From Diadema antillarum (taxonomy: Eukaryota): 64,000 nucleotides of DNA. Of this stretch, positions 8,358 to 20,800 are shown one piece after another. Under the pieces are notes generated by a model. It saw nothing but the letters and a program-made list of their open reading frames with translations, made no database searches and had not been told where the DNA came from. The position numbers were made by a program, and so were the translations under genes. Positions within the stretch are counted from its first letter, which is position 1. Every line of letters starts with the position of its first letter. The stretch is from assembly GCF_040938485.1 (NCBI RefSeq), contig NW_027271783.1, positions 1,426,001 to 1,490,000 on the forward strand, given 5' to 3'.

Positions 8358-8597
8358 CTGTATACGCCGAATATTTTGCGAGGTTTTTATTTTCGCGAAT
8401 TTCGTGTGTCAGTTGCTATTTGCGAAATTAAAGACACGTTAATATATTGACTCTGATCCCGATGTGGATGTGACGTACGCGTGTACTTTGCTCCATTCAG
8501 TACATGACTCCACGATCGCGAATTTAACCACTCATGAAATCGTCGGGAATTCCCGATTCGCAAAAATTTAGACTCGCAAAATATATGGCATATACAG
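8358..8597. mobile_element. TA-flanked CTGTA...TACAG MITE with repeated TTCGCGAA-like motifs
   Basis: TA|CTGTATACGCC...GGCATATACAG|TA. The superfamily is uncertain. Confidence 0.75.
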
Positions 8598-8680
8598 TAT
8601 TACCTTGTGCCTATTGAGTTGGCAACTTACTCACATTACAACACTCTTTCTTTTTTTCCTGCTTTTTTTTTCTTTGTTGT

Positions 8681-10236
8681 TGTAGCGGCAGTATTGATTT
8701 ATTCAAGAAATATTTGATTGGAACAATTTAGACTGTTACACCCCCTTTAAGGTGCAGATCGTTACCTTGGATACACCATCAAGTGCGCATTCCTTCGGTT
8801 GCTTGCGCACTGATTTTGCTTTACGTACTAGTATGCTGTATGCGTACTACATGATAGCCACGCAAAAGATATGGGCCAAGATGCAAGACACGATCAAAAA
8901 AGAATGAGTTCGGATCTGTGATTGATTTACTTTAGGAACCTAAACAGTTTGGTAAGAGAAATTATGATGGAAAACAGACGAATATTTGATTGCTGTAGCT
9001 TTGTTTAATCCTTTATGTAGTGATATGTGTTGTGTTGTTAGCTTGTAATTGAGTTCAGAATTTAGGTTGACATAACGATTCGAAACGGTGTTCGTATAGA
9101 AAGTGATTACACATAGAACAGTACGGTACGCTGTAGGTATTGATTATTGTACATGATTCCTGCTTAGCAGGCAGGGAAGAGAAATGTTGGAAGTGTGAGT
9201 GTATGATTGAAGCTTACAATATTGTGCATGTTTATTTAGGAATAATATAAGACTCCATATTCAGAAGAATATTGTGTCATGGTCATATAGGAATGAGAAT
9301 CAGATTAAGGGATTCAACTTTTGTCACTTTCATAGAGCTGTATACTGTTAGATTTACACAAGTATATGTACGTATACCGTACGGTCAATACAATCCCATA
9401 CATAATTGCCGTTAGAGGGCTAACTTATTTAATGTTTGTGAAGGGTTAGTTTCTTTTTTGGTGTATCATATGGGTGTTGAGGTGTCAAAAGGAAAGACAT
9501 TCAAGGGTTTAAAGGGAAAGATGATCTTGGATTTATTTTATTGTAAGAAAGGCAGGCTGCATTTCTGGATAGTGTTGTAGGGATGCAATTGCATCATTTG
9601 AACTGAATTATGTGAGTGATAGAGATAAAGGTCACTTCATTATGTACGCTTTGTTTGAAATGATCAAAGTAAACAAGTGTGATAGAGTCAGGTCATTTAG
9701 AACAATATTATTATCTCATGGTGCAGTGTATTGGACACTGAGAAATGCAGTACATGTACCATACATCAGATATTGAGTCAGAATATGTCTTTACAAGACA
9801 TTGATGTGTTAATGTTTAGGACTGAACACCGAACACTTGCATATTTAGTGCACTGCATATGGTTGCATGCATTTGGGTTAATAGTGTAAAGTTGTTACTG
9901 TTGTTTATGTTAGTTGATTTATTACAAGTATTAAGTATATTTGGAAGACACAGAAATAATTACACTTGATAAGCTGTTCAAGGTAGTGATAACTAAGCAT
10001 TTATTATTTCTTTTCTCTTTTTATAGCGAACCACAAGTTCGGGTTCGACAGCAGTATGCAAGCACACAAGTACACAAGTTGGTGTGTTCCACAAGTTTTG
10101 GTTCAACACAAGTTCGTGTTTGTCACAAGTACACGAGTCCAGCTGGTATTGATGTCTTCAATAAATGAACGAACCTGTGCGTTCCAACTGTGACTGACTG
10201 AAGTAAACTTTCACCTTTATGTAGTACGTGTCTACA
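8681..10236 (+). repeat. BEL 5' LTR (1556 bp)
   Basis: Starts TGTAGCGGC and ends GTGTCTACA. It is repeated at an offset of 7564, with AATAAA at 10160-10165. Confidence 0.98.
8952..10026 (+). other. Putative spliceosomal intron (1075 nt) inside the BEL LTR; copy at 16516-17590
   Basis: Donor TG|GTAAGA at 8952, branch-like ACTAAG at about 9992, pyrimidine tract TTATTTCTTTTCTCTTTTTA and TAG acceptor at 10024-10026. Actual splicing is inferred, not observed. Confidence 0.65.
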
Positions 10237-10240
10237 TACA

Positions 10241-10252
10241 GTTCGCAAACTG
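10241..10252 (+). promoter_or_regulatory. Non-tRNA primer-binding-site candidate GTTCGCAAACTG
   Basis: Lies 4 nt after the 5' LTR end, where a PBS is expected, but lacks a TGG start. It is the exact reverse complement of 8945-8951 joined to 10027-10031. Confidence 0.6.
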
Positions 10253-10260
10253 GATCCAAA

Positions 10261-13200
10261 ATGGAAGGTCCACTGCATGATAGTCCCAGCCCATCTAGTG
10301 ACGTTGCTGATGAACAACCGGCCGTCAGTGATCCTCCCCAGGATAGATCTACCTCAGGATTGGTGGGAAACGCCCAGATTGGTGGTATTCTACCGGAGCA
10401 AGCTATCCCGAGCGTACCAAGACGTAACCCTGACGATTCGGATGACGACAGGTCAACCACGCTATCATCAGCATCACGACGAAGCAACAGGTCCACATCA
10501 TCTAGAGATAGCGGAAGGACCGCAGCGGCTTCCCGACTGCGTGAGGCCAGAATCAAGTTGGAGCTAGCGAAAGCAAGAAAGGAACAACTGAAAAGGAAAC
10601 AAGAACTAACAAGAGAACAGTTGAGATTGAATGAAAAACTTGCAAATCTTGAGCTAGAACATGAAATTGAAAATGCAGAAATTGAAACACGTGTACTAGC
10701 ATGTGAAGTTCATGATGTTGTTGGTAAGCCACAGTACGAAGTTAATGAAAAGAAGGATGAAGTGAAGTCCTCATTGTTAAATCCTGATGCTCGAGTGTGG
10801 TCAGGAGCAAAGGGTAATGGTGTCACATCTGACCCGGTAGAACGTAATTGTACCACGCCAAGTAGTCCAGTTGAATATGGTGAAGTTCGTATGTCATCTC
10901 ATGATTTGTCTCATGCACCTAACGTTGCTGTAGATGATTGTGTGAGAAGCAGTGATGTGTATAATTCTAACATGAATCCAATATTTCATGCCATTAATGT
11001 TGCTTTTAGCTTGCCAAAGCCAGATTTGGTTACCTTTGATGGCAATCCGACTGTGTATCGCAGCTTCATTAACAGCTTTGAGGTTACCGTGGAACAGAAG
11101 GTGCTGGATGACAGGACCAGACTCACTTATCTCATCCAGTACTGCTCGGGTAAGGCCCGCAACAGCATCGAGAACTGTGTTCTCATGGAACCACGTGAGG
11201 GTTATGCTGAAGCGAAGAGGATTTTGAGAGAGCAGTTTGGACAACCGCACGTGGTAGCGAATGCTCACTTGGATAAGATCCTGAAACGTTCACAAGTCAA
11301 GCAGAACGACCATGCAGGACTGTGGGATCTTGCGCGAGATATGAAGCGTTGTGGGATGGTTCTAGCCCAGATGGGATATCTCGCTGATGCAAACGGCTCT
11401 GAGACACTACTCAAGATTCAACGTCTGTTACCCGTTCACCTTCAAGCAGAATGGGCGAGGAGAGCCCATGCCATGATGGTGAGATGTGTTGTGCCCAACT
11501 TCGACTTGATGACAACGTTTGTAGAAGAATCCGCCCAGTTGGCCAGCAACATCTTTGGACGAAACATCGGGAAAGTGATTCCAAAGAATGACAAGTCGAT
11601 GAAGAAAGAAACACGACCCAGAGGGACAGCGTTTGCAACTCAGAGGGTCGATGAAAACACACCACGTCCCGTCCAAGGCAGTCGAGATCGTCCTGAAAGG
11701 AAATGTCCTTGCTGTCAAGGAAGGCACAATCTCACGTCCTGTGAATCCTTCAAGAAGAAAGGGGTAGACGACAGACGAGACGTAGCTAGGAAAGCGAGAC
11801 TGTGCTTCAATTGCCTACGACCATTTCATTTGGCTGTAGGCTGTCTTTCCACAGCTCGCTGTGAAGTAACCGACTGTGGTAAGAAGCATCATGCTCTTCT
11901 GCACACAACATACAATCCTAGTCGGAACTCTCCTCGGCAAGAGAACCGAGAGGACAGTACAAGGCAAGAAAACCAACAAGGGGTAAAGCAAGATAACCCA
12001 AGCTCTTCAAGTGGTAGTCAAGGAGATGAAAGGTTGGGTCGGTCATTCACCGCTCATTCCTCAAGAGGCAAGATCTGTCTGAGAGTCGTACCCATAAAGG
12101 TTGGAGGAAATGGGAGACAAACTACAACCTGGGCCTTGTTAGATGAAGGCAGCGACATTTCGCTGTGCACGAAGGGTCTTGTCGACAAGCTAGGTCTCAC
12201 TGGGACGGAAAGAAGCTTCAAGCTGTCTACGGTGGACCAGACAGGAGCAAGCAAACGTGGCCTTGAAGTTTCCATGTCAGTCCAAGGAGTTATGGGCCAG
12301 GAAACCTTGACACTGGACAATGTTTGGACTGTAGACAGTCTTCCAGTCGCCGACGAATGTTTCCCCAACTCAGCAGATGTAAAGGAATGGTCACACCTAA
12401 ATGACATCACCCTTCCTTCCATGGACCAAGGAGAAGTGGAGCTACTAGTGGGAGCAGACACCCCAGAAGCGTTCTGGAATTTGGAACAGAGAGTCGGCAA
12501 TCCGAAAGAACCCTATGCAGTTCGAACTCCACTAGGATGGACGCTTATGGGTCCCGTGTCCGGGAAGCGACAATCCACGACAAGTTTCCATGCGAATTTT
12601 ACTCGCCTTCAAGACGACTCCCTCGAACAACAGTTGAAGCAGTTCTGGAGGGTGGACTTTGGCGGGTATCTCAATCAGGACAATGTTGGAGATTCGGTTG
12701 AAGATCTTCGAGCACTGAAGGTGATGAAGGAATCTGCAGTGATGGTCGATGGTCACTATCAAGTCGCTCTACCGTGGCGCAGTTTTCCACCTGTCCTGCC
12801 AAACAATCGTCGTTTGGCCGAGGCGAGACTTGGGTATTTGAAGAAGAGGTTGGAACGGAACGAAGCCCTACGTGATAAGTACGTAGAGACAGTCAGCGAC
12901 TACATAGCCAAAGGGTATGCAAAGGAAGTCGAGTGCATACCGTCGGATGTATCAGCTGAGAGCGCCACCCAAGAAGAAGCTTCAAATGAGCCAGTTTGGT
13001 ATCTCCCACACCACGCTGTAGTTCATCCTCGTAAGAAAGACAAAGTCCGCGTTGTGTTCGATTGTGCGGCGAGATATGGAGGAACTTCACTCAATGAACA
13101 ACTGCTCCAAGGGCCGGACCTTACCAACAATCTAGTTGGCGTGCTTACGAGGTTTCGTCAGGAACAAGTTGCCATAGTCGCCGATATTCAGTCTATGTTC

Positions 13201-15969
13201 CACCAAGTGAAGGTTCCGCCCAGGGACAGAAACGCCATGAGATTCCTTTGGTGGAAGGACGGTGACTTGGCTCAGGAACCAGCCGAATACTGCATGACTG
13301 TACACCTATTCGGCGCCACGTCTTCACCTAGTTGTGCCAGTTTTGCTCTACGGAAGACTGCTGAGGATAATCGCGGACACTTCAATGAAGAAGTGATCAA
13401 CACAGTGAAAAGGAACTTCTATGTGGACGATTGTCTTAAGTCTGTTAAGGATCGAGCTGAAGCAGTGACTCAAGTAGAAGACATTCGTGACCTGCTCAGT
13501 CGTGGTGGATTTCGGCTCACGAAATGGTTGAGCAATGACCGCGACGTCTTAGGTTCTATACCTGAGGAAGATAGGGCAGCATCGGTGTCGAGCCTAGATA
13601 TCGACGAGCTTCCTGCAGAACGCACTCTAGGAATCCTTTGGGACGTTGAAACAGACTGTTTTGGCTTCAAGGTGCATCTCCGTGAGAAGCCTGCAACGCG
13701 ACGGGGAATTCTGTCGATAGCCAGTTCCCTCTATGACCCCCTTGGGTTCGTTGCTCCCTTCGTGCTGCCAGCCAAGATTCTCCTTCAAAGGTTGTGTAGA
13801 GTAGGATTAGGCTGGGATGAGCCTGTTGGAGCCGAGGATGAGAGAGAATGGCGAAGATGGATGGAAGACATTTCCATGTTGACTGACTTGAAGATAGAGA
13901 GATGTTTCAAACCGAATGGTTTCGAAGTCGTGTCAGCTGAAGTGCATCACTTCTGTGATGCCTCCGAAGTTGGATATGCGTCCGTTGCATACCTACGCCT
14001 GACTGACAGAACAGGACGGATACATTGTGCCTTTGTTATGGGGAAGTCGCGACTTGCTCCAGTGAAAGTAGTATCCATCCCCAGATTGGAGTTAATGGCA
14101 GCAGTGTTGGCCGTGTCCATGGATCATTTCATCAAGTCAGCGCTTGACATCCAAGTCAAAGACAGCGTCTTTTGGACTGACTCAACATCTGTCCTTCAGT
14201 ATATCCGCAGTGAAAGCAAGAGATTCATGACGTTTGTAGCCAATCGTGTGGCAAGGATTCATGATGCCTCAGAGGTGTCTCAGTGGAGATACGTAGACTC
14301 AAAGTCTAATCCAAGTGACGACGGATCACGTGGCCTGAAGGCACAGGAACTACTCCAGAACCAGCGTTGGCTCAAAGGACCAGATTTTCTGTGGAGAGAC
14401 GATGACTGGCCCATTCAGCCAGAAGTCTTGGAGTTAAGAGGAGACGCTGAAGTGAAGAAAGCAGTACCAGTATATGCGACAGCAATCAGAGCTCAAGTCA
14501 GCGACCTCTTGCATAGGTACTCTTCGTGGAATCAGTTGAGGAAATCCACAGCGTGGCTTCTTCGTTTCAAGAAGCTTCTCAAAGTCAAGGCTAAGGGGGA
14601 ATCCACGGATGATCTGAAGAAGCCCACTCTATCTGCCGACGAATTGAAACAAGCAGAGAAAGCAATCGTGACTCTGGTGCAACGCGATGAATTCAGCGCT
14701 ATCCTCGAAGGAAAGCAGATGAGCGGTACAGTCATGTCCAAGCTGAACCCAATTCTGGTGGATGGCATCATTCGAGTTGGCGGAAGACTAGAGAACGCAC
14801 CACTGGATGATGAGACGAAACATCCTATCATTTTGCCCTCTGATCACCATGTGACGAAGCTCTTGATCGTTCATCACCATCACCTAGTAGGTCATTCGGG
14901 GGCCGGGATGACCTGGACAGCCCTCAGAGAGAAGTATTGGGTGTTGAAAGGAGGGGCAACCGTGCGAAAGGTGATAGGCAAGTGTTTCTCGTGCAAGCGA
15001 AGAAATGCCAAGAAGATGGAACAATTCATGGCAGATCTTCCGAGTAGTAGGGTGACCCCAGACAAACCACCTTTCTCTTATGTGGGAATTGATTACTTTG
15101 GACCAATCATGGTGAAGCAAGGTCGTAGCCGGGTCAAACGTTACGGGTGCTTGTTTACCTGTCTGAACTGCAGAGCGGTCCACCTAGAAGTAGCAAACAC
15201 TTTGGACACAGACTCCTTCATAAACGCACTGAGAAGGTTCATCAGCAGGCGAGGTAAGCCATCTAAAATCATCAGTGACAATGGGAGCAACTTTAGAGGT
15301 GCGGAACGAGAACTTCGTGAGAACCTGGAAAGTTTGAGCCAAACGCGTGTGACTAACTTCCTCGCTGAGCAAGGCATTGACTGGAACTTCAATACTCCCA
15401 CAGCTAGTCACATGGGCGGAGCCTGGGAACGGATGGTGAGGTCTGTTCGCAAGATACTTACCTGCTTACTTGGACAGCAAATTGTCAATGATGAAGTTCT
15501 GTCCACGCTCATGGCTGAAGTAGAGTCAATCTTGAATGCTCGGCCACTCACTCAGTTGAATCTTGACCCAAACGATGACGAACCTTTGACACCAAACCAC
15601 TTGTTGATCATGCGAAAAGGCTCTAGTCTCCCTCCAGGTGTCTTTGATCAGAAGGACGCATATGGCAGACGCAGATGGAGACAAGTGCAATATCTCGCTT
15701 CTGTCTTTTGGAAGAGGTGGCAGAGGGAATATTTACTTCTGCTGCAAGAAAGGCAGAAGTGGAATGCCCCAAGACGGAACCTAGCTGTCAATGATTTGGT
15801 CTTGGTAGCGGATGAAACCAAACCTCGCGGACAGTGGCCTTTGGGTAAAGTGGTTGAAGTGTACCCGGGAAAGGATGGACATGTTCGACAGGCTCAAGTG
15901 AGGGTTGGAACAAGATTCTTCAAGAGGCCAATAGCAAAGCTCTGTCTGCTCGAAGCCGCTGAAACGTAG
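10261..15969 (+). CDS. BEL/Pao gag-pol polyprotein (1902 aa from ATG 10261)
   Basis: Uninterrupted ORF. Motifs: gag LPKPDLVTFDGNP; the BEL triple Cys/His array (CPCCQGRHNLTSC, CFNCLRPFHLAVGC, CEVTDCGKKHHALLH); protease LLDEGS (12142); RT YLPHHAV and YVDD (13420); RNase H HFCDASEVGY; integrase GHSG...CFSC, GIDYFGP, SDNGSNF and GGAWERMV; C-terminal WPLGKVVEVYPGKDG. Confidence 0.98.
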   Translation: MEGPLHDSPSPSSDVADEQPAVSDPPQDRSTSGLVGNAQIGGILPEQAIPSVPRRNPDDSDDDRSTTLSSASRRSNRSTSSRDSGRTAAASRLREARIKLELAKARKEQLKRKQELTREQLRLNEKLANLELEHEIENAEIETRVLACEVHDVVGKPQYEVNEKKDEVKSSLLNPDARVWSGAKGNGVTSDPVERNCTTPSSPVEYGEVRMSSHDLSHAPNVAVDDCVRSSDVYNSNMNPIFHAINVAFSLPKPDLVTFDGNPTVYRSFINSFEVTVEQKVLDDRTRLTYLIQYCSGKARNSIENCVLMEPREGYAEAKRILREQFGQPHVVANAHLDKILKRSQVKQNDHAGLWDLARDMKRCGMVLAQMGYLADANGSETLLKIQRLLPVHLQAEWARRAHAMMVRCVVPNFDLMTTFVEESAQLASNIFGRNIGKVIPKNDKSMKKETRPRGTAFATQRVDENTPRPVQGSRDRPERKCPCCQGRHNLTSCESFKKKGVDDRRDVARKARLCFNCLRPFHLAVGCLSTARCEVTDCGKKHHALLHTTYNPSRNSPRQENREDSTRQENQQGVKQDNPSSSSGSQGDERLGRSFTAHSSRGKICLRVVPIKVGGNGRQTTTWALLDEGSDISLCTKGLVDKLGLTGTERSFKLSTVDQTGASKRGLEVSMSVQGVMGQETLTLDNVWTVDSLPVADECFPNSADVKEWSHLNDITLPSMDQGEVELLVGADTPEAFWNLEQRVGNPKEPYAVRTPLGWTLMGPVSGKRQSTTSFHANFTRLQDDSLEQQLKQFWRVDFGGYLNQDNVGDSVEDLRALKVMKESAVMVDGHYQVALPWRSFPPVLPNNRRLAEARLGYLKKRLERNEALRDKYVETVSDYIAKGYAKEVECIPSDVSAESATQEEASNEPVWYLPHHAVVHPRKKDKVRVVFDCAARYGGTSLNEQLLQGPDLTNNLVGVLTRFRQEQVAIVADIQSMFHQVKVPPRDRNAMRFLWWKDGDLAQEPAEYCMTVHLFGATSSPSCASFALRKTAEDNRGHFNEEVINTVKRNFYVDDCLKSVKDRAEAVTQVEDIRDLLSRGGFRLTKWLSNDRDVLGSIPEEDRAASVSSLDIDELPAERTLGILWDVETDCFGFKVHLREKPATRRGILSIASSLYDPLGFVAPFVLPAKILLQRLCRVGLGWDEPVGAEDEREWRRWMEDISMLTDLKIERCFKPNGFEVVSAEVHHFCDASEVGYASVAYLRLTDRTGRIHCAFVMGKSRLAPVKVVSIPRLELMAAVLAVSMDHFIKSALDIQVKDSVFWTDSTSVLQYIRSESKRFMTFVANRVARIHDASEVSQWRYVDSKSNPSDDGSRGLKAQELLQNQRWLKGPDFLWRDDDWPIQPEVLELRGDAEVKKAVPVYATAIRAQVSDLLHRYSSWNQLRKSTAWLLRFKKLLKVKAKGESTDDLKKPTLSADELKQAEKAIVTLVQRDEFSAILEGKQMSGTVMSKLNPILVDGIIRVGGRLENAPLDDETKHPIILPSDHHVTKLLIVHHHHLVGHSGAGMTWTALREKYWVLKGGATVRKVIGKCFSCKRRNAKKMEQFMADLPSSRVTPDKPPFSYVGIDYFGPIMVKQGRSRVKRYGCLFTCLNCRAVHLEVANTLDTDSFINALRRFISRRGKPSKIISDNGSNFRGAERELRENLESLSQTRVTNFLAEQGIDWNFNTPTASHMGGAWERMVRSVRKILTCLLGQQIVNDEVLSTLMAEVESILNARPLTQLNLDPNDDEPLTPNHLLIMRKGSSLPPGVFDQKDAYGRRRWRQVQYLASVFWKRWQREYLLLLQERQKWNAPRRNLAVNDLVLVADETKPRGQWPLGKVVEVYPGKDGHVRQAQVRVGTRFFKRPIAKLCLLEAAET

Positions 15970-16233
15970 TGATATAAGTGGATGACTTAATTGCAGTCAT
16001 CAGACTTGATACTCTAGCTTAAGAGTTGAATCGAATGTTTGATGTTTGCTTATTCGAAGGTTAAGCAATGCCTTTGAGATGTAAGCGCGAGTAAGCCGAT
16101 TTGACAGTTATTTTAAACTGTAGTTATTTGCATTAAGTACATGCATTTGCTGTTGAACGGTTTGTATGTGAATAGGAAGAATTTCTGCCGCCTAAAGATT
16201 GAGGTTAAATGACCATCCTGTGGGTTGCTCATT

Positions 16234-16244
16234 GGGGGCCGGTA
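16234..16244 (+). promoter_or_regulatory. Polypurine-tract-like plus-strand primer site (GGGGGCCGGTA)
   Basis: G-rich tract directly abutting the 3' LTR start. Confidence 0.75.
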
Positions 16245-17800
16245 TGTAGCGGCAGTATTGATTTATTCAAGAAATATTTGATTGGAACAATTTAGACTGT
16301 TACACCCCCTTTAAGGTGCAGATCGTTACCTTGGATACACCATCAAGTGCGCATTCCTTCGGTTGCTTGCGCACTGATTTTGCTTTACGTACTAGTATGC
16401 TGTATGCGTACTACATGATAGCCACGCAAAAGATATGGGCCAAGATGCAAGACACGATCAAAAAAGAATGAGTTCGGATCTGTGATTGATTTACTTTAGG
16501 AACCTAAACAGTTTGGTAAGAGAAATTATGATGGAAAACAGACGAATATTTGATTGCTGTAGCTTTGTTTAATCCTTTATGTAGTGATATGTGTTGTGTT
16601 GTTAGCTTGTAATTGAGTTCAGAATTTAGGTTGACATAACGATTCGAAACGGTGTTCGTATAGAAAGTGATTACACATAGAACAGTACGGTACGCTGTAG
16701 GTATTGATTATTGTACATGATTCCTGCTTAGCAGGCAGGGAAGAGAAATGTTGGAAGTGTGAGTGTATGATTGAAGCTTACAATATTGTGCATGTTTATT
16801 TAGGAATAATATAAGACTCCATATTCAGAAGAATATTGTGTCATGGTCATATAGGAATGAGAATCAGATTAAGGGATTCAACTTTTGTCACTTTCATAGA
16901 GCTGTATACTGTTAGATTTACACAAGTATATGTACGTATACCGTACGGTCAATACAATCCCATACATAATTGCCGTTAGAGGGCTAACTTATTTAATGTT
17001 TGTGAAGGGTTAGTTTCTTTTTTGGTGTATCATATGGGTGTTGAGGTGTCAAAAGGAAAGACATTCAAGGGTTTAAAGGGAAAGATGATCTTGGATTTAT
17101 TTTATTGTAAGAAAGGCAGGCTGCATTTCTGGATAGTGTTGTAGGGATGCAATTGCATCATTTGAACTGAATTATGTGAGTGATAGAGATAAAGGTCACT
17201 TCATTATGTACGCTTTGTTTGAAATGATCAAAGTAAACAAGTGTGATAGAGTCAGGTCATTTAGAACAATATTATTATCTCATGGTGCAGTGTATTGGAC
17301 ACTGAGAAATGCAGTACATGTACCATACATCAGATATTGAGTCAGAATATGTCTTTACAAGACATTGATGTGTTAATGTTTAGGACTGAACACCGAACAC
17401 TTGCATATTTAGTGCACTGCATATGGTTGCATGCATTTGGGTTAATAGTGTAAAGTTGTTACTGTTGTTTATGTTAGTTGATTTATTACAAGTATTAAGT
17501 ATATTTGGAAGACACAGAAATAATTACACTTGATAAGCTGTTCAAGGTAGTGATAACTAAGCATTTATTATTTCTTTTCTCTTTTTATAGCGAACCACAA
17601 GTTCGGGTTCGACAGCAGTATGCAAGCACACAAGTACACAAGTTGGTGTGTTCCACAAGTTTTGGTTCAACACAAGTTCGTGTTTGTCACAAGTACACGA
17701 GTCCAGCTGGTATTGATGTCTTCAATAAATGAACGAACCTGTGCGTTCCAACTGTGACTGACTGAAGTAAACTTTCACCTTTATGTAGTACGTGTCTACA
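16245..17800 (+). repeat. BEL 3' LTR (1556 bp)
   Basis: Same length as the 5' LTR, with no differences in the stretches compared by eye. The ORF track gives identical 75-aa ORFs at 9941 and 17505. AATAAA lies at 17724-17729. Confidence 0.98.
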
Positions 17801-20800
17801 GTTGTTGTTGAATCTTAAGCTGTTAAGTCCTGAAGTAATTTTTACAGCAGCAATTATTATCTTTTGCTCATCAAATTGGCAACTCTGAAATTTATTCCAT
17901 GTCTTATATTGCAGAAAGGTTAAATGGAGCTGGTTATATTCATTACATTTGGGAAAAAAGGACATAACTAGTGATACAAAATACTGCCACTTTGAGACAG
18001 GACAAGAAAAAAAAGACACCTTTAATATTCTAAGACATGCTGCCAATTTAAGGATCAGTTACAAAGCAAGTGATTACAAGGTTTCACATAATTCTGAAAA
18101 AAATAATGATAACTAGTGATACAACTTTAACTTGGTCTAACTTTAAGGCGATTTTCTCACATGAAGCAGTGAGTTGCAAGCACAAGCTTGCAGCGCAGGT
18201 GACAACATTTGTTTTTAATTACTCAGATAAGACGTATAGTTTGCTTAGAATCAAGACTGTAAAAATAAGATTGTATTAAATCAGGTTAGAATTACCCAAC
18301 ATTCAGATAGATACATTAGTCTCCAGCAAATGGCATTTTACACAATAGCTGTATCAAGACCCCATGAGCTACCATAACCAATTAAACAAGCAATTTTTCA
18401 TAAATGTTATACCATCAAACATACATCAACCACATATATACTCAAAGAGTGCTCGGTTTGTCAGTAGAATTAAAAATGAGGTCATATTAAAGCTTTGCCT
18501 CACATGAAGATGTTTTATAGATCAAAGCATTCAGATTTTAAAGAAAAAAAATGAATTAATGAATGAATGTGAAGCTGTAATTCAGCAGGAATGGTTTGGC
18601 TGAATGTAATTGGAACAGCACGAGTGAAGAGCTGTGATGTGAGCTTGCTTTCAGACACACTAAAGTGCCTTAATTGGCCTCAAATGGATATTTCTAAAGA
18701 CATTCATTATCAAGTTTGCATTTTGCCACTTGTAAGGGTTAAATGGCCATCTTATCTCCCTCCTGCTTTAGACTTTGTGATTGTTGGTGAATGCACGTCA
18801 TTTCAGCTAAAAAAGCCAATACACCTGGTAGTGATTAACCTGAAAAAAAAATGAGAAAATCTCCAAATTTCTGATCGTTTTCTTTTGAATGTCTGACAGT
18901 TTCTCGAATTGCCCGACAATAAAGGGATGTGGTTTCATTTTTTGAGGTAAGAGATATATTATGACCAGATTTAATGCTCTGATGGTCCCCCATGCGATCA
19001 CTCATTACAATGCTACAAAGGCCACATTTCTGTCTGACAAAACCAATCAAAATAATGTCTGAACACTGCGCGTTAAAGATAAACTTCGCCTGTCTTTTGC
19101 AGGGACTGTCGAGTATCCATTATAAAATGCCAGCTTTTGAAGCCACCAAATGTCAAGTTTCACATTAGCCAACCTTCCCCACAATGTATAAAGACTAACT
19201 GATTTTCAGCTACTCTACGTTTAAAATTTACCTCAACCATCTTCCAAACAATATGGCAACTCACACTTAGAGTGAACATCTGAACACCAGAAAAATCACA
19301 TTTCAGTGAAATTGTGAAAGAAACTGTGCTAAAAGAAACAAAACGTCGCAAAAAAAAATGCAGAGAAGGGGGTGACGTCTGTTTTTGTTTCTTTGTTTGT
19401 TTGTTTTAGATTTGGGATGAGTATGTTCACTGCAGAGTAATCACAATTTGTGTCGCATGTTTTCTGCCTCCTACTCTCAGCTAAGGAACCTAAGATAATC
19501 AGCAAGCAGGGCAGACTATTTGTCAACATCACTTAACAGTTGAGATTTGTCCCCGGTGTCATGTACTTGCAATTTGTATGCTGCAAGATGACTGGAATGT
19601 TTTAACGTTGAAATTCACAATCTATGGAAAATCTGTTCATTCAGCTGCACGCTGCACCTTTTGAGAGTATTTGAAAAGAATTAAAAAGATGAGCTAAAAA
19701 TTATAGATAGCAAAAAAAACAAAACAAAACTTTGAGTTTTGAGATACCAGCCATCACTACTTTACATGTTATTCTTCTGACTGCTTCGAAGAGTCTAGTT
19801 ACAGTTCCAGGAACAACTGGCAGATTACAGCAGCACATAACTCAAATATTTTTGTTCCACAGATAAAATCCTTCATCACCCCTTCAATTTTCTTTTTTTT
19901 TTCTTGTGCTTTGCCTACAAGTGGCCCAGTTCCATACCAATGATATCAATACTTAGAGCAAGGGGACAAAAAGGGAGTCGGGAGAGAGAGAAGGCAGCAT
20001 AAAACAAGTTGAAGTACTAAAATTTCATTGACATTGGATACAGGTCAATGCCTGAAAGGAGAGACAATATTTCACAGCGCAAAGGAGAATTTGACAGAGT
20101 AATGCAGAGACTCAGGAGTAACTGTGTCATTGGTAGAAACTCGGGAAAAAAAATCAAAGATTGAGAGAAGGGGAAGATGACTGCAACTCCATGATAAATG
20201 ATAGATAGATCGAGAGAGAGAGAGGGAAAAAATTAAAGTAGATGGGGGTGAGAGAAGATGACCTCAATAAATGTGCACACCCACTCAAAAAGAATGCAAG
20301 ATGGGTACGACTTCGGAACAAGTTGGCCAAACTGAATGCAGGTAGGACAGGATGTGGGAAGACAGGTGGCACAGAAAAAAAAAACAACCTCCTTTCCTCA
20401 TTCGAAGCAAAAAATTTCTATACATGTGAAAGTTTGGTATTATGGGCACATTTGGATGTAGAAAATTTGAAATAGAAACCATAATATATTCTGAAGATGG
20501 AAAGTTACTTGATTGAATGATTTAGTGTTAAAAAAAAGCTACTTGATAAAAGTTAGAAGTCAACAATATCAACAACAGGAAGTGGTATCTATGGCCCTCA
20601 TTTTTCAAGTCATTTGTTCAGTAATACTGTCTCTCTGACATTCTGGTTAATGCTGATATTCCCCCTGTTCAGACACAAGCCAATTTATACCAAAACTCGA
20701 TAAAGAAACGACGTATAAAGAATCATCGTATAGCCGACAGACCGTTCAGAAGCCAATTTCGATTATTCCGGAAAAACGTTGTATAGATGTGCAGTTTCTC

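Follow-up and report, generated by a model that had tools for sequence, protein, structure and literature searches.

The Ty3/gypsy element Tf1 primes from its own RNA: the leading 11 nt pair with the primer-binding site (PBS), and RNase H cuts between nucleotides 11 and 12 (PMC7175516). According to the ICTV profile, Belpaoviridae have long terminal repeats (LTRs) 0.2-1.2 kb in length and an 18-nt site that binds tRNA-Arg or tRNA-Gly of the host, and a host tRNA primes their replication (PMC8742986). The common view is that LTR retroelements copy unspliced genomic RNA, and a start of reverse transcription that is tied to nuclear splicing would be unexpected. A functional 5' splice site within an LTR is known from retroviruses. 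HTLV-1/BLV and foamy viruses have their major splice donor inside R, downstream of the transcription start; their acceptor lies outside the LTR, splicing gives subgenomic mRNAs and not a primer, and priming is by tRNA. Introns having both splice sites inside the LTR were reported for maize LTR retrotransposons, with a claim to be the first evidence of LTR introns (bioRxiv 10.64898/2026.05.08.723830).

The window analysed here, a 64-kb stretch of the Diadema antillarum genome, contains an intact and very young BEL/Pao retrotransposon with the following parts.

8676-8680, + strand: left copy of the target-site duplication (TSD), GTTGT, repeated directly behind the 3' LTR.
8681-10236, + strand: 5' LTR, TGTAG...CTACA, 1556 nt, with 0 differences to 16245-17800 by position-by-position identity.
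10261-15969, + strand: single gag-pol open reading frame of BEL/Pao type, 1902 aa, with Pfam matches.
16232-16244, + strand: polypurine-tract-like TTGGGGGCCGGTA (GGGGGCCGG tract), adjoining the 3' LTR.
16245-17800, + strand: 3' LTR, 100% identical to the 5' LTR, with the same donor (16515/16516), intron and acceptor (17590/17591).
17801-17805, + strand: right TSD copy, GTTGT, matching 8676-8680 (5-bp duplication).

The reading frame matches Peptidase_A17 (E 3e-46), DUF1759, DUF5641, RVT_1, rve and Integrase_H2C2 in Pfam and shares 99% identity with a Diadema antillarum protein. The criteria of protein domains and LTR structure for BEL/Pao elements are satisfied (Pao-type domains; TG..CA LTRs, a short TSD and a polypurine tract, with a GGGGCCGG motif at the equivalent position in relatives), and the criterion of a Ty3/gypsy (chromovirus-like) pol is failed, the pol being Pao-type. 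BEL/Pao membership thus stands by protein, and the presence of a tRNA PBS, a criterion that this element fails, is descriptive and not phylogenetic. The element shares the gag-pol domain set, TG..CA LTRs, 5-bp TSD and polypurine tract with canonical BEL/Pao elements (Belpaoviridae, Semotivirus); its clade differs from them in lacking a tRNA site, in LTRs of up to ~1.8 kb and in having an LTR intron. A zebrafish BEL element that was examined identically has a classic TGG... site, unlike this clade, and no TGG-led tRNA complement is found in the post-LTR sequence TACAGTTCGCAAACTGGATCC. The original prediction, made from sequence alone, was that no TGG-starting tRNA PBS follows the 5' LTR. This held with a small correction: there is a TGG at 10251-10253 (CTGGATCC), without anything like a tRNA 3' end after it.

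The 5' LTR and the sequence after it can be subdivided as follows.

8681-8944, + strand: putative U3 (promoter part), inferred as the part upstream of the initiator-like AACAGTT where complementarity begins; there are no start-site data.
8945-8951, + strand: exon 1, (C)AGTTTG, the 5' half of the proposed self-primer, ending at the donor G/GTAAGA.
8952-10026, + strand: LTR intron of spliceosomal type, 1075 nt, GTAAGA...pyrimidine tract...TAG, precisely absent from both LTRs of one full-length copy.
10027-10031, + strand: first 5 nt of exon 2, CGAAC, the 3' half of the proposed self-primer, read from the sequence.
10032-10236, + strand: rest of exon 2, a working R (six CACAAGT repeats, AATAAA at 10160-10165) and U5, read from the sequence; the role in strand transfer is inferred.
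10218-10238, + strand: predicted hairpin UAUGUAG...CUACAUA (U5-IR-like) directly before the primer site, from the minimum-energy fold of the spliced leader.
10237-10240, + strand: spacer TACA between LTR end and primer site, read from the sequence; 0-8 nt in relatives.
10241-10252, + strand: primer-binding site GTTCGCAAACTG, the exact reverse complement of spliced CAGTTTG+CGAAC, starting 4 nt past the LTR.

The original prediction had named the donor CAGTTTG/GTAAGA (8951/8952) and the acceptor TAG/CGAAC (10026/10027), had described their junction as the exact 12-nt reverse complement of 10241-10252, had placed this site 4 nt from the LTR edge, and had stated that neither half suffices alone. 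All of these claims held, with LTR limits taken from position-by-position identity. The acceptor follows a pyrimidine tract ending in ...CTCTTTTTATAG at 10009-10026, and the spliced 8951/10027 joint reads CAGTTTG/CGAAC, so that the primer is split 7+5 by the intron. No contiguous complement of at least 9 nt to the 40 nt after the LTR exists within the LTR, and the criterion of a Tf1-style contiguous primer at the U3/R border is failed. In an unbiased comparison of all GT/AG pairs of the LTR with the 40 nt after it, this junction and site gave the sole match of at least 11 nt; when the post-LTR 40-mer was shuffled 20000 times with the junction fixed, 12 nt was reached once. The site is unaltered in the six full-length copies that were read directly and in the intron-less copy described below. 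In relatives, AGTTG/GTAAGT donors homologous to that of the window element are present, and the distance from LTR start to donor is 137-530 nt. The match begins at an initiator-like CA(+1)GTT / CCA(+1)AT motif, which is the sole basis for calling it the 5' end of the transcript. No TATA box was seen at a fixed distance, merely a loose A/T-rich patch ~17-27 nt upstream, and the predicted transcription start at about 8945/8946 remains an inference.

Splicing at exactly 8951/8952 and 10026/10027, and reverse transcription of the spliced RNA, are shown by genomic copies. In copy C735, which is flanked by a TSD of its own (TACAT) and shares the primer site of the window element, both LTRs are 482 nt long, have 0 mutual differences and lack exactly 8952-10026. 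The criterion for a GT-AG intron (consensus donor GTAAGA, CTCTTTTTATAG acceptor and precise loss in a retrocopy with its own TSD) is thereby satisfied. Besides such precise intron-less retrocopies, the predicted junction was seen in one public-run X2 contig, which joins 8950/1 to 10026/7 with GT..AG ends, although this joint may come from RNA or DNA: the four runs compared were all contigs, and none is recorded as RNA. Precise intron-less LTRs occur in three further families (C654; C111/C551; C665/C1803), and in that of C654 28/28 bases agree at the junction. Because intron-less copies exist, spliced RNA can itself be a template; among the genomic LTRs of the window family, ~40 retain the intron as against 2 without it. 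Two loci seemed at first sight to have other arrangements. The 'contiguous Tf1-like primer' of L081 was rejected, as other copies of its family keep a 340-770-nt intron at exactly that point and L081 is therefore a precise intron loss; the contiguous primer in the C665/C1803 copies is likewise a secondary intron loss. The 'two halves 10 nt apart' of L080 were rejected as an imprecise, near-complete intron deletion, other copies retaining a 730-nt intron.

The original prediction had proposed that donor-side and acceptor-side exon bases should co-vary with the post-LTR sequence in related families, and this test was passed. In 16 families, drawn from Diadema, Strongylocentrotus, Lytechinus, two further assemblies and probably a mosquito, the LTR splice junction at the homologous place is complementary over 10-14 nt to a site 0-8 nt past the LTR. 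There are 14 distinct primer/site pairs among them, each complementary only to its own partner type. The pairs include the following (a slash marks the splice joint).

AGTTTG/CGAAC, site GTTCGCAAACT (window family)
AGTTG/CGAAC, site GTTCGCAAUU (one G.U pair)
AGTTG/TAAAC, site GTTTACAACT
AGTCG/TGAAC, site GTTCACGACT
AGTTG/TGAAC, site GTTCACAACT
AGTTG/CTAAC, site GTTAGCAACT
AATCG/TGAAC, site GTTCACGATT
TATTCA/ATAAC, site GTTATTGAATA
TGTC/GTTGAAC, site GTTCAACGACA
TGAT/ATTGAAC, site GTTCAATATCA
TGTT/ATTGAAC, site GTTCAATAACA
AATTTG/ATTGTTAT, site ATAACAATCAAATT
TGAATT/TTGAAG, site CTTCAAAATTCA (mosquito, 52-nt intron)

The complementarity and its co-variation are shown by these families. The first two bases of exon 2 co-vary with the post-LTR site across families, and in sister families both primer halves differ and the site has changed to match. 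Ten families in the Diadema genome have ten different sites, and no site is matched by any LTR junction other than that of its own family. The intron separating the halves is 237-1322 nt long in families of the echinoid clade and 52 nt in the mosquito element, and the observed match length was attained in 0-6 of 20000 shuffles per family. On this 16-family co-variation, the pairing of junction and site is functional. In L068 (P0004), a sister of the C673 family, a homologous acceptor, CAG/CGAACC, is present, but a GTAAG donor, a CTACA LTR end and a complement between junction and site are all missing. The low-coverage contig that carries it is assembled in tandem or circular form, and the copy is possibly rearranged or an assembly artefact. 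For L091, an LTR pair was absent from the range examined. The P0003 family was sampled through C221 in the genome. The starfish copy L077 is truncated, without LTRs, and uninformative.

We consider it likely that the element starts reverse transcription from a piece of its own RNA that exists only after splicing. The original prediction that self-priming takes place only after splicing is supported to this extent; the start site, the RNase H cut, the act of priming and the unequal splicing of the two LTRs are inferred. In the proposed mechanism, transcription would begin within the 5' LTR, only 5-8 nt ahead of the donor at 8951/8952, and excision of the 1075-nt intron would join (C)AGTTTG to CGAAC. 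The resulting 11-12-nt 5' end would fold back on GTTCGCAAACTG, 4 nt past the LTR. The element's RNase H would then cut after ...AAC, as in Tf1, and the free 3' end would prime minus-strand DNA into U5. Since this cut would take away all of exon 1, strong-stop DNA would end within exon 2 and could then pair with the same exon in the 3' LTR copy. If the 3' copy is unspliced, the intron would be restored to both new LTRs; if it is also spliced, an intron-less copy would result.

The likeness to Tf1/Tf2 and other Tf1/sushi Ty3/gypsy elements consists in a post-LTR site that can pair over 10-14 nt with the RNA of the element itself (with its 5' end, as proposed here), in the absence of a tRNA and in a stem-loop predicted between primer and site. 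The criterion of a U5-IR-like stem-loop beside the primer site is satisfied by prediction. The differences are that the primer here is non-contiguous and is joined only by splicing of an LTR intron, that the elements are BEL/Pao and not Ty3/gypsy, and that cut and extension are here inferred. Several points count against the mechanism, among them L068 with its unmatched junction and the want of direct RNA or cDNA evidence. A first exon of 5-8 nt is unusually short for the spliceosome. With up to 8 nt lying between the LTR end and the site, integrase would have to trim more than the usual 2 nt. Intron-less copies are rare despite having a ready-made contiguous primer, and this rarity is unexplained. 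The mechanism also raises the puzzles of how the same intron is removed at one end of the RNA and kept at the other, and how so short an exon is spliced. A bolder reading, to which we give slightly less than even odds, makes splicing a condition that must be fulfilled before replication throughout a large, old BEL/Pao branch extending from sea urchins to mosquitoes. Only RNA with a spliced, cap-proximal micro-exon of 5-8 nt would then carry the primer, and the intron would be rebuilt in each cycle from the unspliced 3' LTR copy. The element would in that case need its two identical LTR copies to be spliced differently within a single RNA.

The rival explanation that survives best is priming in trans, in which the spliced RNA or its 5' fragment donates only the primer and a co-packaged unspliced RNA is the template. 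This remains possible. It needs no unequal splicing of the LTRs, since the intron is simply copied along from the unspliced template, and the ~40:2 excess of intron-bearing LTRs is as expected if unspliced RNA is the usual template. Retroviruses package unspliced RNA, which is a further point in its favor, and ATG codons in the intron may hinder translation of the unspliced form, fitting a division of labour between two RNAs. On the other hand, minimum-energy folds give an intramolecular closing duplex, the review of Tf1 describes RNA structures within a transcript that bring both regions together (PMC7175516), and spliced RNA is able to act as template, as the intron-less copies show. The present evidence does not separate priming in cis from priming in trans.

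A second rival accepts the duplex of junction and site as real and selected, and assigns it to packaging, dimerisation, translation control or poly(A) bypass, the true primer being unrecognised. Retroviruses have long-range pairings of the 5' leader with regulatory roles, and there is no biochemical evidence of priming here. We nevertheless regard this reading as unlikely. The site lies 0-8 nt past the LTR edge in every family, which is the position that defines the start of the minus strand, and in the duplex the junction strand is oriented with its 3' end towards U5. There is no other conserved candidate primer site and no tRNA-type site in these leaders, and in length and geometry the duplex is the same as that of the Tf1 self-primer (PMC7175516).

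It is less likely still, and in our view very improbable, that the true primer is some host RNA matching GTTCGCAAACTG, be it a tRNA, a fragment of one or another small RNA, and that the junction match is incidental. In its favor, BEL/Pao elements are described as primed by tRNA-Arg or tRNA-Gly (PMC8742986), and the full set of host tRNAs is unscreened. Against it, the site does not start with TGG, no tRNA genes were found in the 64-kb window, and there are no Rfam matches in the LTR and leader (8600-10400). One host RNA cannot fit, moreover, because ten families in one genome carry ten different sites; a matching host tRNA, which the original prediction had listed as a possible refutation, is contradicted by these families, each site being matched only by its own LTR. 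Chance, meaning a lucky donor and acceptor among the many GT/AG pairs of a long LTR, is all but ruled out: unbiased searches do turn up the occasional chance split match of 10-12 nt whose splice signals are poor (11-mers in L076 and L066), but the intron-less retrocopies fix donor and acceptor independently of the match, and homologous sites yield matching junctions in 16 families with compensatory changes.

If the self-priming reading is true, it would add a third priming route for LTR retroelements beside the host tRNA and the contiguous self-primer of Tf1, and would place it in Belpaoviridae, which reference texts describe as tRNA-primed. The original prediction knew of no description of a primer created by splicing, and consistent with this, no papers on self-priming of BEL/Pao elements or on a primer made by splicing were found in the literature searched. 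The spliced LTR transcripts of maize differ in coming from plant elements and in having products read as lncRNAs, with no link to a primer site or to reverse transcription (bioRxiv 10.64898/2026.05.08.723830). A self-primer made by splicing would account for both the great length of these LTRs and their intron. Primer and site are free to drift together because both are owned by the element and there is no conserved host tRNA to match, and the 14 different pairs are evidence of such joint drift. There is also a gap in annotation, in that pipelines relying on tRNA sites miss the primer site of these elements.

Folding of the spliced leaders agrees with this arrangement at the level of prediction. 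The 5' end pairs with the post-LTR site in the minimum-energy fold of 12 of the 14 spliced leaders, and AAUAAA lies within exon 2 in 13 of the 14. A TGTAG...CTACA hairpin comparable to that of the window element is predicted, by folding only, for most of its relatives.

The window element is an intact BEL/Pao retrotransposon. Its two LTRs, compared position by position at an offset of 7564, have 0 differences; their termini are TGTAG...CTACA, and the 5-bp target duplication GTTGT lies on both flanks. The open frame between them contains Peptidase_A17, DUF1759, DUF5641, RVT_1, Integrase_H2C2 and rve domains; its product shares 99% identity with a protein of Diadema antillarum, which places the host among the diadematid sea urchins. 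The 1.75 Gb genome contains no fewer than 15 full-length copies (97-100% identity), and the post-LTR sequence was alike in 6/6 copies read directly, barring one spacer change. As a separate observation, the left flank (8500-8696) is an extremely abundant repeat in sequencing runs X2 and X4, with a summed word depth of about 100000 versus 75-300 for the element, and contig breaks are numerous inside it at 8597-8601.

Features of the window element (forward strand)
8681-10236: first LTR, 1556 nt
8945-8951: donor-side half CAGTTTG, followed by GTAAGA
10026: end of the pyrimidine tract, in TAG
10027-10031: acceptor-side half CGAAC
10241-10252: proposed primer-binding site GTTCGCAAACTG, 4 nt past the LTR end
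10261-15969: single open frame, 1902 aa
16245-17800: second LTR, 1556 nt

The original prediction was that splicing within the LTR assembles the complement of the post-LTR site. All of its sequence letters and coordinates held on re-reading, and the match was confirmed. When every GT/AG pair in the LTR was searched without bias against the 40 nt after the LTR, CAGTTTG/CGAAC (exon 1/exon 2) was the sole match of 11 nt or more, and any contiguous complement in the same search was shorter than 9 nt. The complementarity is present after splicing only. Independent lines of comparative and genomic evidence support the further interpretation, a splice-made self-primer; the priming act itself is inferred.

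Probing the genome with 23 nt across the spliced junction gave two matches, both on contig C735 and 6463 nt apart. This locus is a full-length copy with two 482-nt LTRs (0 differences between them), exactly 8952-10026 being absent from both. The copy is flanked by a target duplication of its own, TACAT, shares the primer site of the window element, and has a reading frame broken near residue 404-413. Since the copy lacks the intron and has its own target duplication, RNA spliced at exactly the 8951/10027 bonds was reverse-transcribed and integrated. The donor-plus-intron junction is present in 40 LTRs of the genome, compared to the two of C735 without the intron. In addition, one X2 contig runs from 8950/1 straight into 10026/7, with GT..AG ends, and contigs of run X1 break exactly at 8951 and 10026. 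Because it is not on record whether these runs are RNA or DNA, we took them as evidence for the existence of the joined form and nothing more. The junction CAGTTTG/CGAAC, which had been suggested as a thing to seek, was therefore found in one genomic retrocopy and one contig of unrecorded type.

The genome was also probed with predicted junctions of other families. The C221 family probe had an exact 28-nt match on contig C654, in an LTR with U3 and exon 1 fused directly to exon 2 and U5, and the junction of a C155-like subfamily had two matches (C111 and C551); the C1070 probe had no match in the genome. A contiguous primer, considered for copies on C665 and C1803, was rejected in favour of a precise loss of the intron, since 340-770 nt interrupt other copies of the family exactly at TGTT/ATTGAAC, with GTGAGT...TTTTGCAG at the split point in the C7 copy. 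Splicing at the predicted bonds is documented in four families. In the C810 copy (L080:2165-2200) both LTRs have lost nearly all of the intron, but imprecisely, with GTAAGTAGAA left between the primer halves; the ORF of this copy is intact, and at least 8 other copies keep the 730-nt intron. Intron-less forms were a small minority of copies in each family examined, and this rarity, despite a ready-made primer, is a weak point that the proposal does not account for. Two further loci were irregular. On C665, the LTR pair without intron (C665:1196802-1197119 and C665:1189859-1190239) is only about 90% alike, and both C1803 LTRs match the C665 5' LTR at 100%; recombination may have produced the C665 copy. 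The C1512 3' LTR lacks about 1.08 kb found in its 5' LTR (L064:770-2547 versus L065:353-1050), the deletion lying between two GTTATATTTT repeats, with the donor lost and the acceptor kept.

In order to compare families, relatives were gathered by protein from other urchins and further assemblies, and 5' regions of other families from the Diadema genome. Every resolved relative (locus L068 was unresolved) has a strong donor 137-530 nt into the LTR, an acceptor with a pyrimidine tract 177-370 nt before the LTR end, and a junction complementary to a site 0-8 nt past the LTR. LTR introns of the tabulated families are 237-1322 nt long.

Junctions (exon 1/exon 2) and post-LTR sites. C, families of the Diadema genome; L, fetched loci of related elements.
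Window family: (C)AGTTTG/CGAAC; site GTTCGCAAACTG
C673: AGTTG/CGAAC; site GTTCGCAAUU, one G.U
C1070, S. purpuratus L067, L. pictus L076: AGTTG/TAAAC; site GTTTACAACT
C221: AGTCG/TGAAC; site GTTCACGACT
C155/C78, S. purpuratus L075: AGTTG/TGAAC; site GTTCACAACT
L. variegatus L066: AGTTG/CTAAC; site GTTAGCAACT
L069: AATCG/TGAAC; site GTTCACGATT
L078: TATTCA/ATAAC; site GTTATTGAATA
C56: TGTC/GTTGAAC; site GTTCAACGACA
C370: TGAT/ATTGAAC; site GTTCAATATCA
C7: TGTT/ATTGAAC; site GTTCAATAACA
C1512: AATTTG/ATTGTTAT; site ATAACAATCAAATT

When junctions were crossed with sites, pairing was restricted to the own site type. With the junction fixed, shuffling the post-LTR 40-mer 20000 times reached the observed match length in 0-6 cases per family. 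In the pol tree the window family groups with C221 as its sister (support 99/97); both primer halves differ between them, with matching changes in the site. Primer and site co-evolve, and the suggested test of co-variation between exon bases and post-LTR sequence came out in favour of the prediction.

Spliced leaders, starting at the first paired base and extending 28 nt beyond the LTR, were then folded. In 12 of the 14 the 5' end is predicted to pair with the post-LTR site in the minimum-energy structure, and a predicted hairpin UGUAG...CUACA (10218-10238 in the window element) usually lies just before the site; AAUAAA is located in exon 2. This predicted layout is that described for the Ty3/gypsy element Tf1 (PMC7175516): nt 1-11 base-pair with the site, the RNase H cut falls between nt 11 and 12, and a U5-IR-like stem-loop has to be present. 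By inference, without start-site data, transcription would start at the initiator-like CA(+1)GTT where complementarity begins, or at CCA(+1)AT in another subgroup, leaving an exon 1 of only 5-8 nt. RNase H would cut after ...AAC, and the 3' end would prime into U5, although no cDNA-end data are available. Since this cut would take off all of exon 1, strong-stop DNA would end in exon 2 and transfer to the same exon in the 3' LTR copy. An unspliced 3' copy would restore the intron, and a spliced one would give C735-like products. The cap-binding complex favours a cap-proximal donor, and exon definition would poorly handle a 3' donor after a ~6-kb 'exon'; on this textbook basis only, the two LTR copies might be spliced unequally. 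Plus-strand strong-stop synthesis copies the primer in retroviruses with tRNA primers. By analogy, it would write junction changes into the site one cycle later, and such copying would make it easier for primer and site to drift in concert.

The main alternative, which remains possible, is priming in trans on unspliced co-packaged RNA; it could not be separated here from priming in cis. Priming by a host tRNA or small RNA and a chance origin of the match are both all but excluded, because ten different sites coexist within one genome, each complementary to its own LTR. Splice-made self-priming in BEL/Pao is therefore the likely reading, with priming, start site and RNase H cut inferred and no raw RNA reads. 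Its weak points are the unusual 5-8-nt first exon and spacers of up to 8 nt, which imply end-trimming beyond the usual 2 nt.

Belpaoviridae are described as primed by host tRNA-Arg or tRNA-Gly, with LTRs of 0.2-1.2 kb (ICTV profile, PMC8742986), and self-priming has been reported in Ty3/gypsy elements of the Tf1/sushi group (PMC7175516). Introns lying within LTRs have been reported for maize in a 2026 preprint, which calls this a first and draws no tie to priming (bioRxiv 10.64898/2026.05.08.723830). Neither self-priming in BEL/Pao nor a splice-created primer was found in the full-text literature searched. It is probable that this form of self-primed reverse transcription is new, but coverage was incomplete and novelty is unproven.

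Beyond sea urchins, a BEL element of the mosquito Malaya genurostris (L090:3535-4000, CM058073.1; 32% identity) appears to have the same design in miniature: its LTR is 449 nt long, with a 52-nt intron between donor CACTGAATT/GTAAGT and acceptor CCCTTCTAG/TTGAAG. Its junction TGAATT/TTGAAG is complementary to CTTCAAAATTCA (12 nt), 3 nt past the LTR, a match reached by 2/1000 shuffles and by 0 with strong splice signals. This single instance is only a lead; should it be borne out, the trait would predate sea urchins by far. A zebrafish BEL element (L089:3961-3985, CM111188.1) differs in having a classic tRNA-type site, TGGTCCTTCGAGCCGGA, 3 nt past its 929-nt LTR, a probable match to the tRNA-Tyr 3' end.

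Some repeats were also seen. The start of exon 2 in the window element (10030-10135) has six CACAAGT copies, with CACT/CACA-rich short repeats at the matching position in relatives; this stretch is proposed as R for strand transfer. Several families (L066:4398-4500, L071, L072, L073, L078) have 2-4 tandem, slightly differing primer-site motifs between LTR and start codon, four units of ~24 nt in Lytechinus; these may have arisen by slippage in strand transfer, or may be spare sites. Finally, TGG(A/G) directly follows the self-primer site in about half of the families (window 10251-10254; L070, L071, L076, L064, L079), in the contexts CTGGATCC, TTGGGGAC, TTGGATTT, TTGGACGT, TTGGACTG and TTGGAGTT; the bases beyond it vary among families, so that no single tRNA fits.
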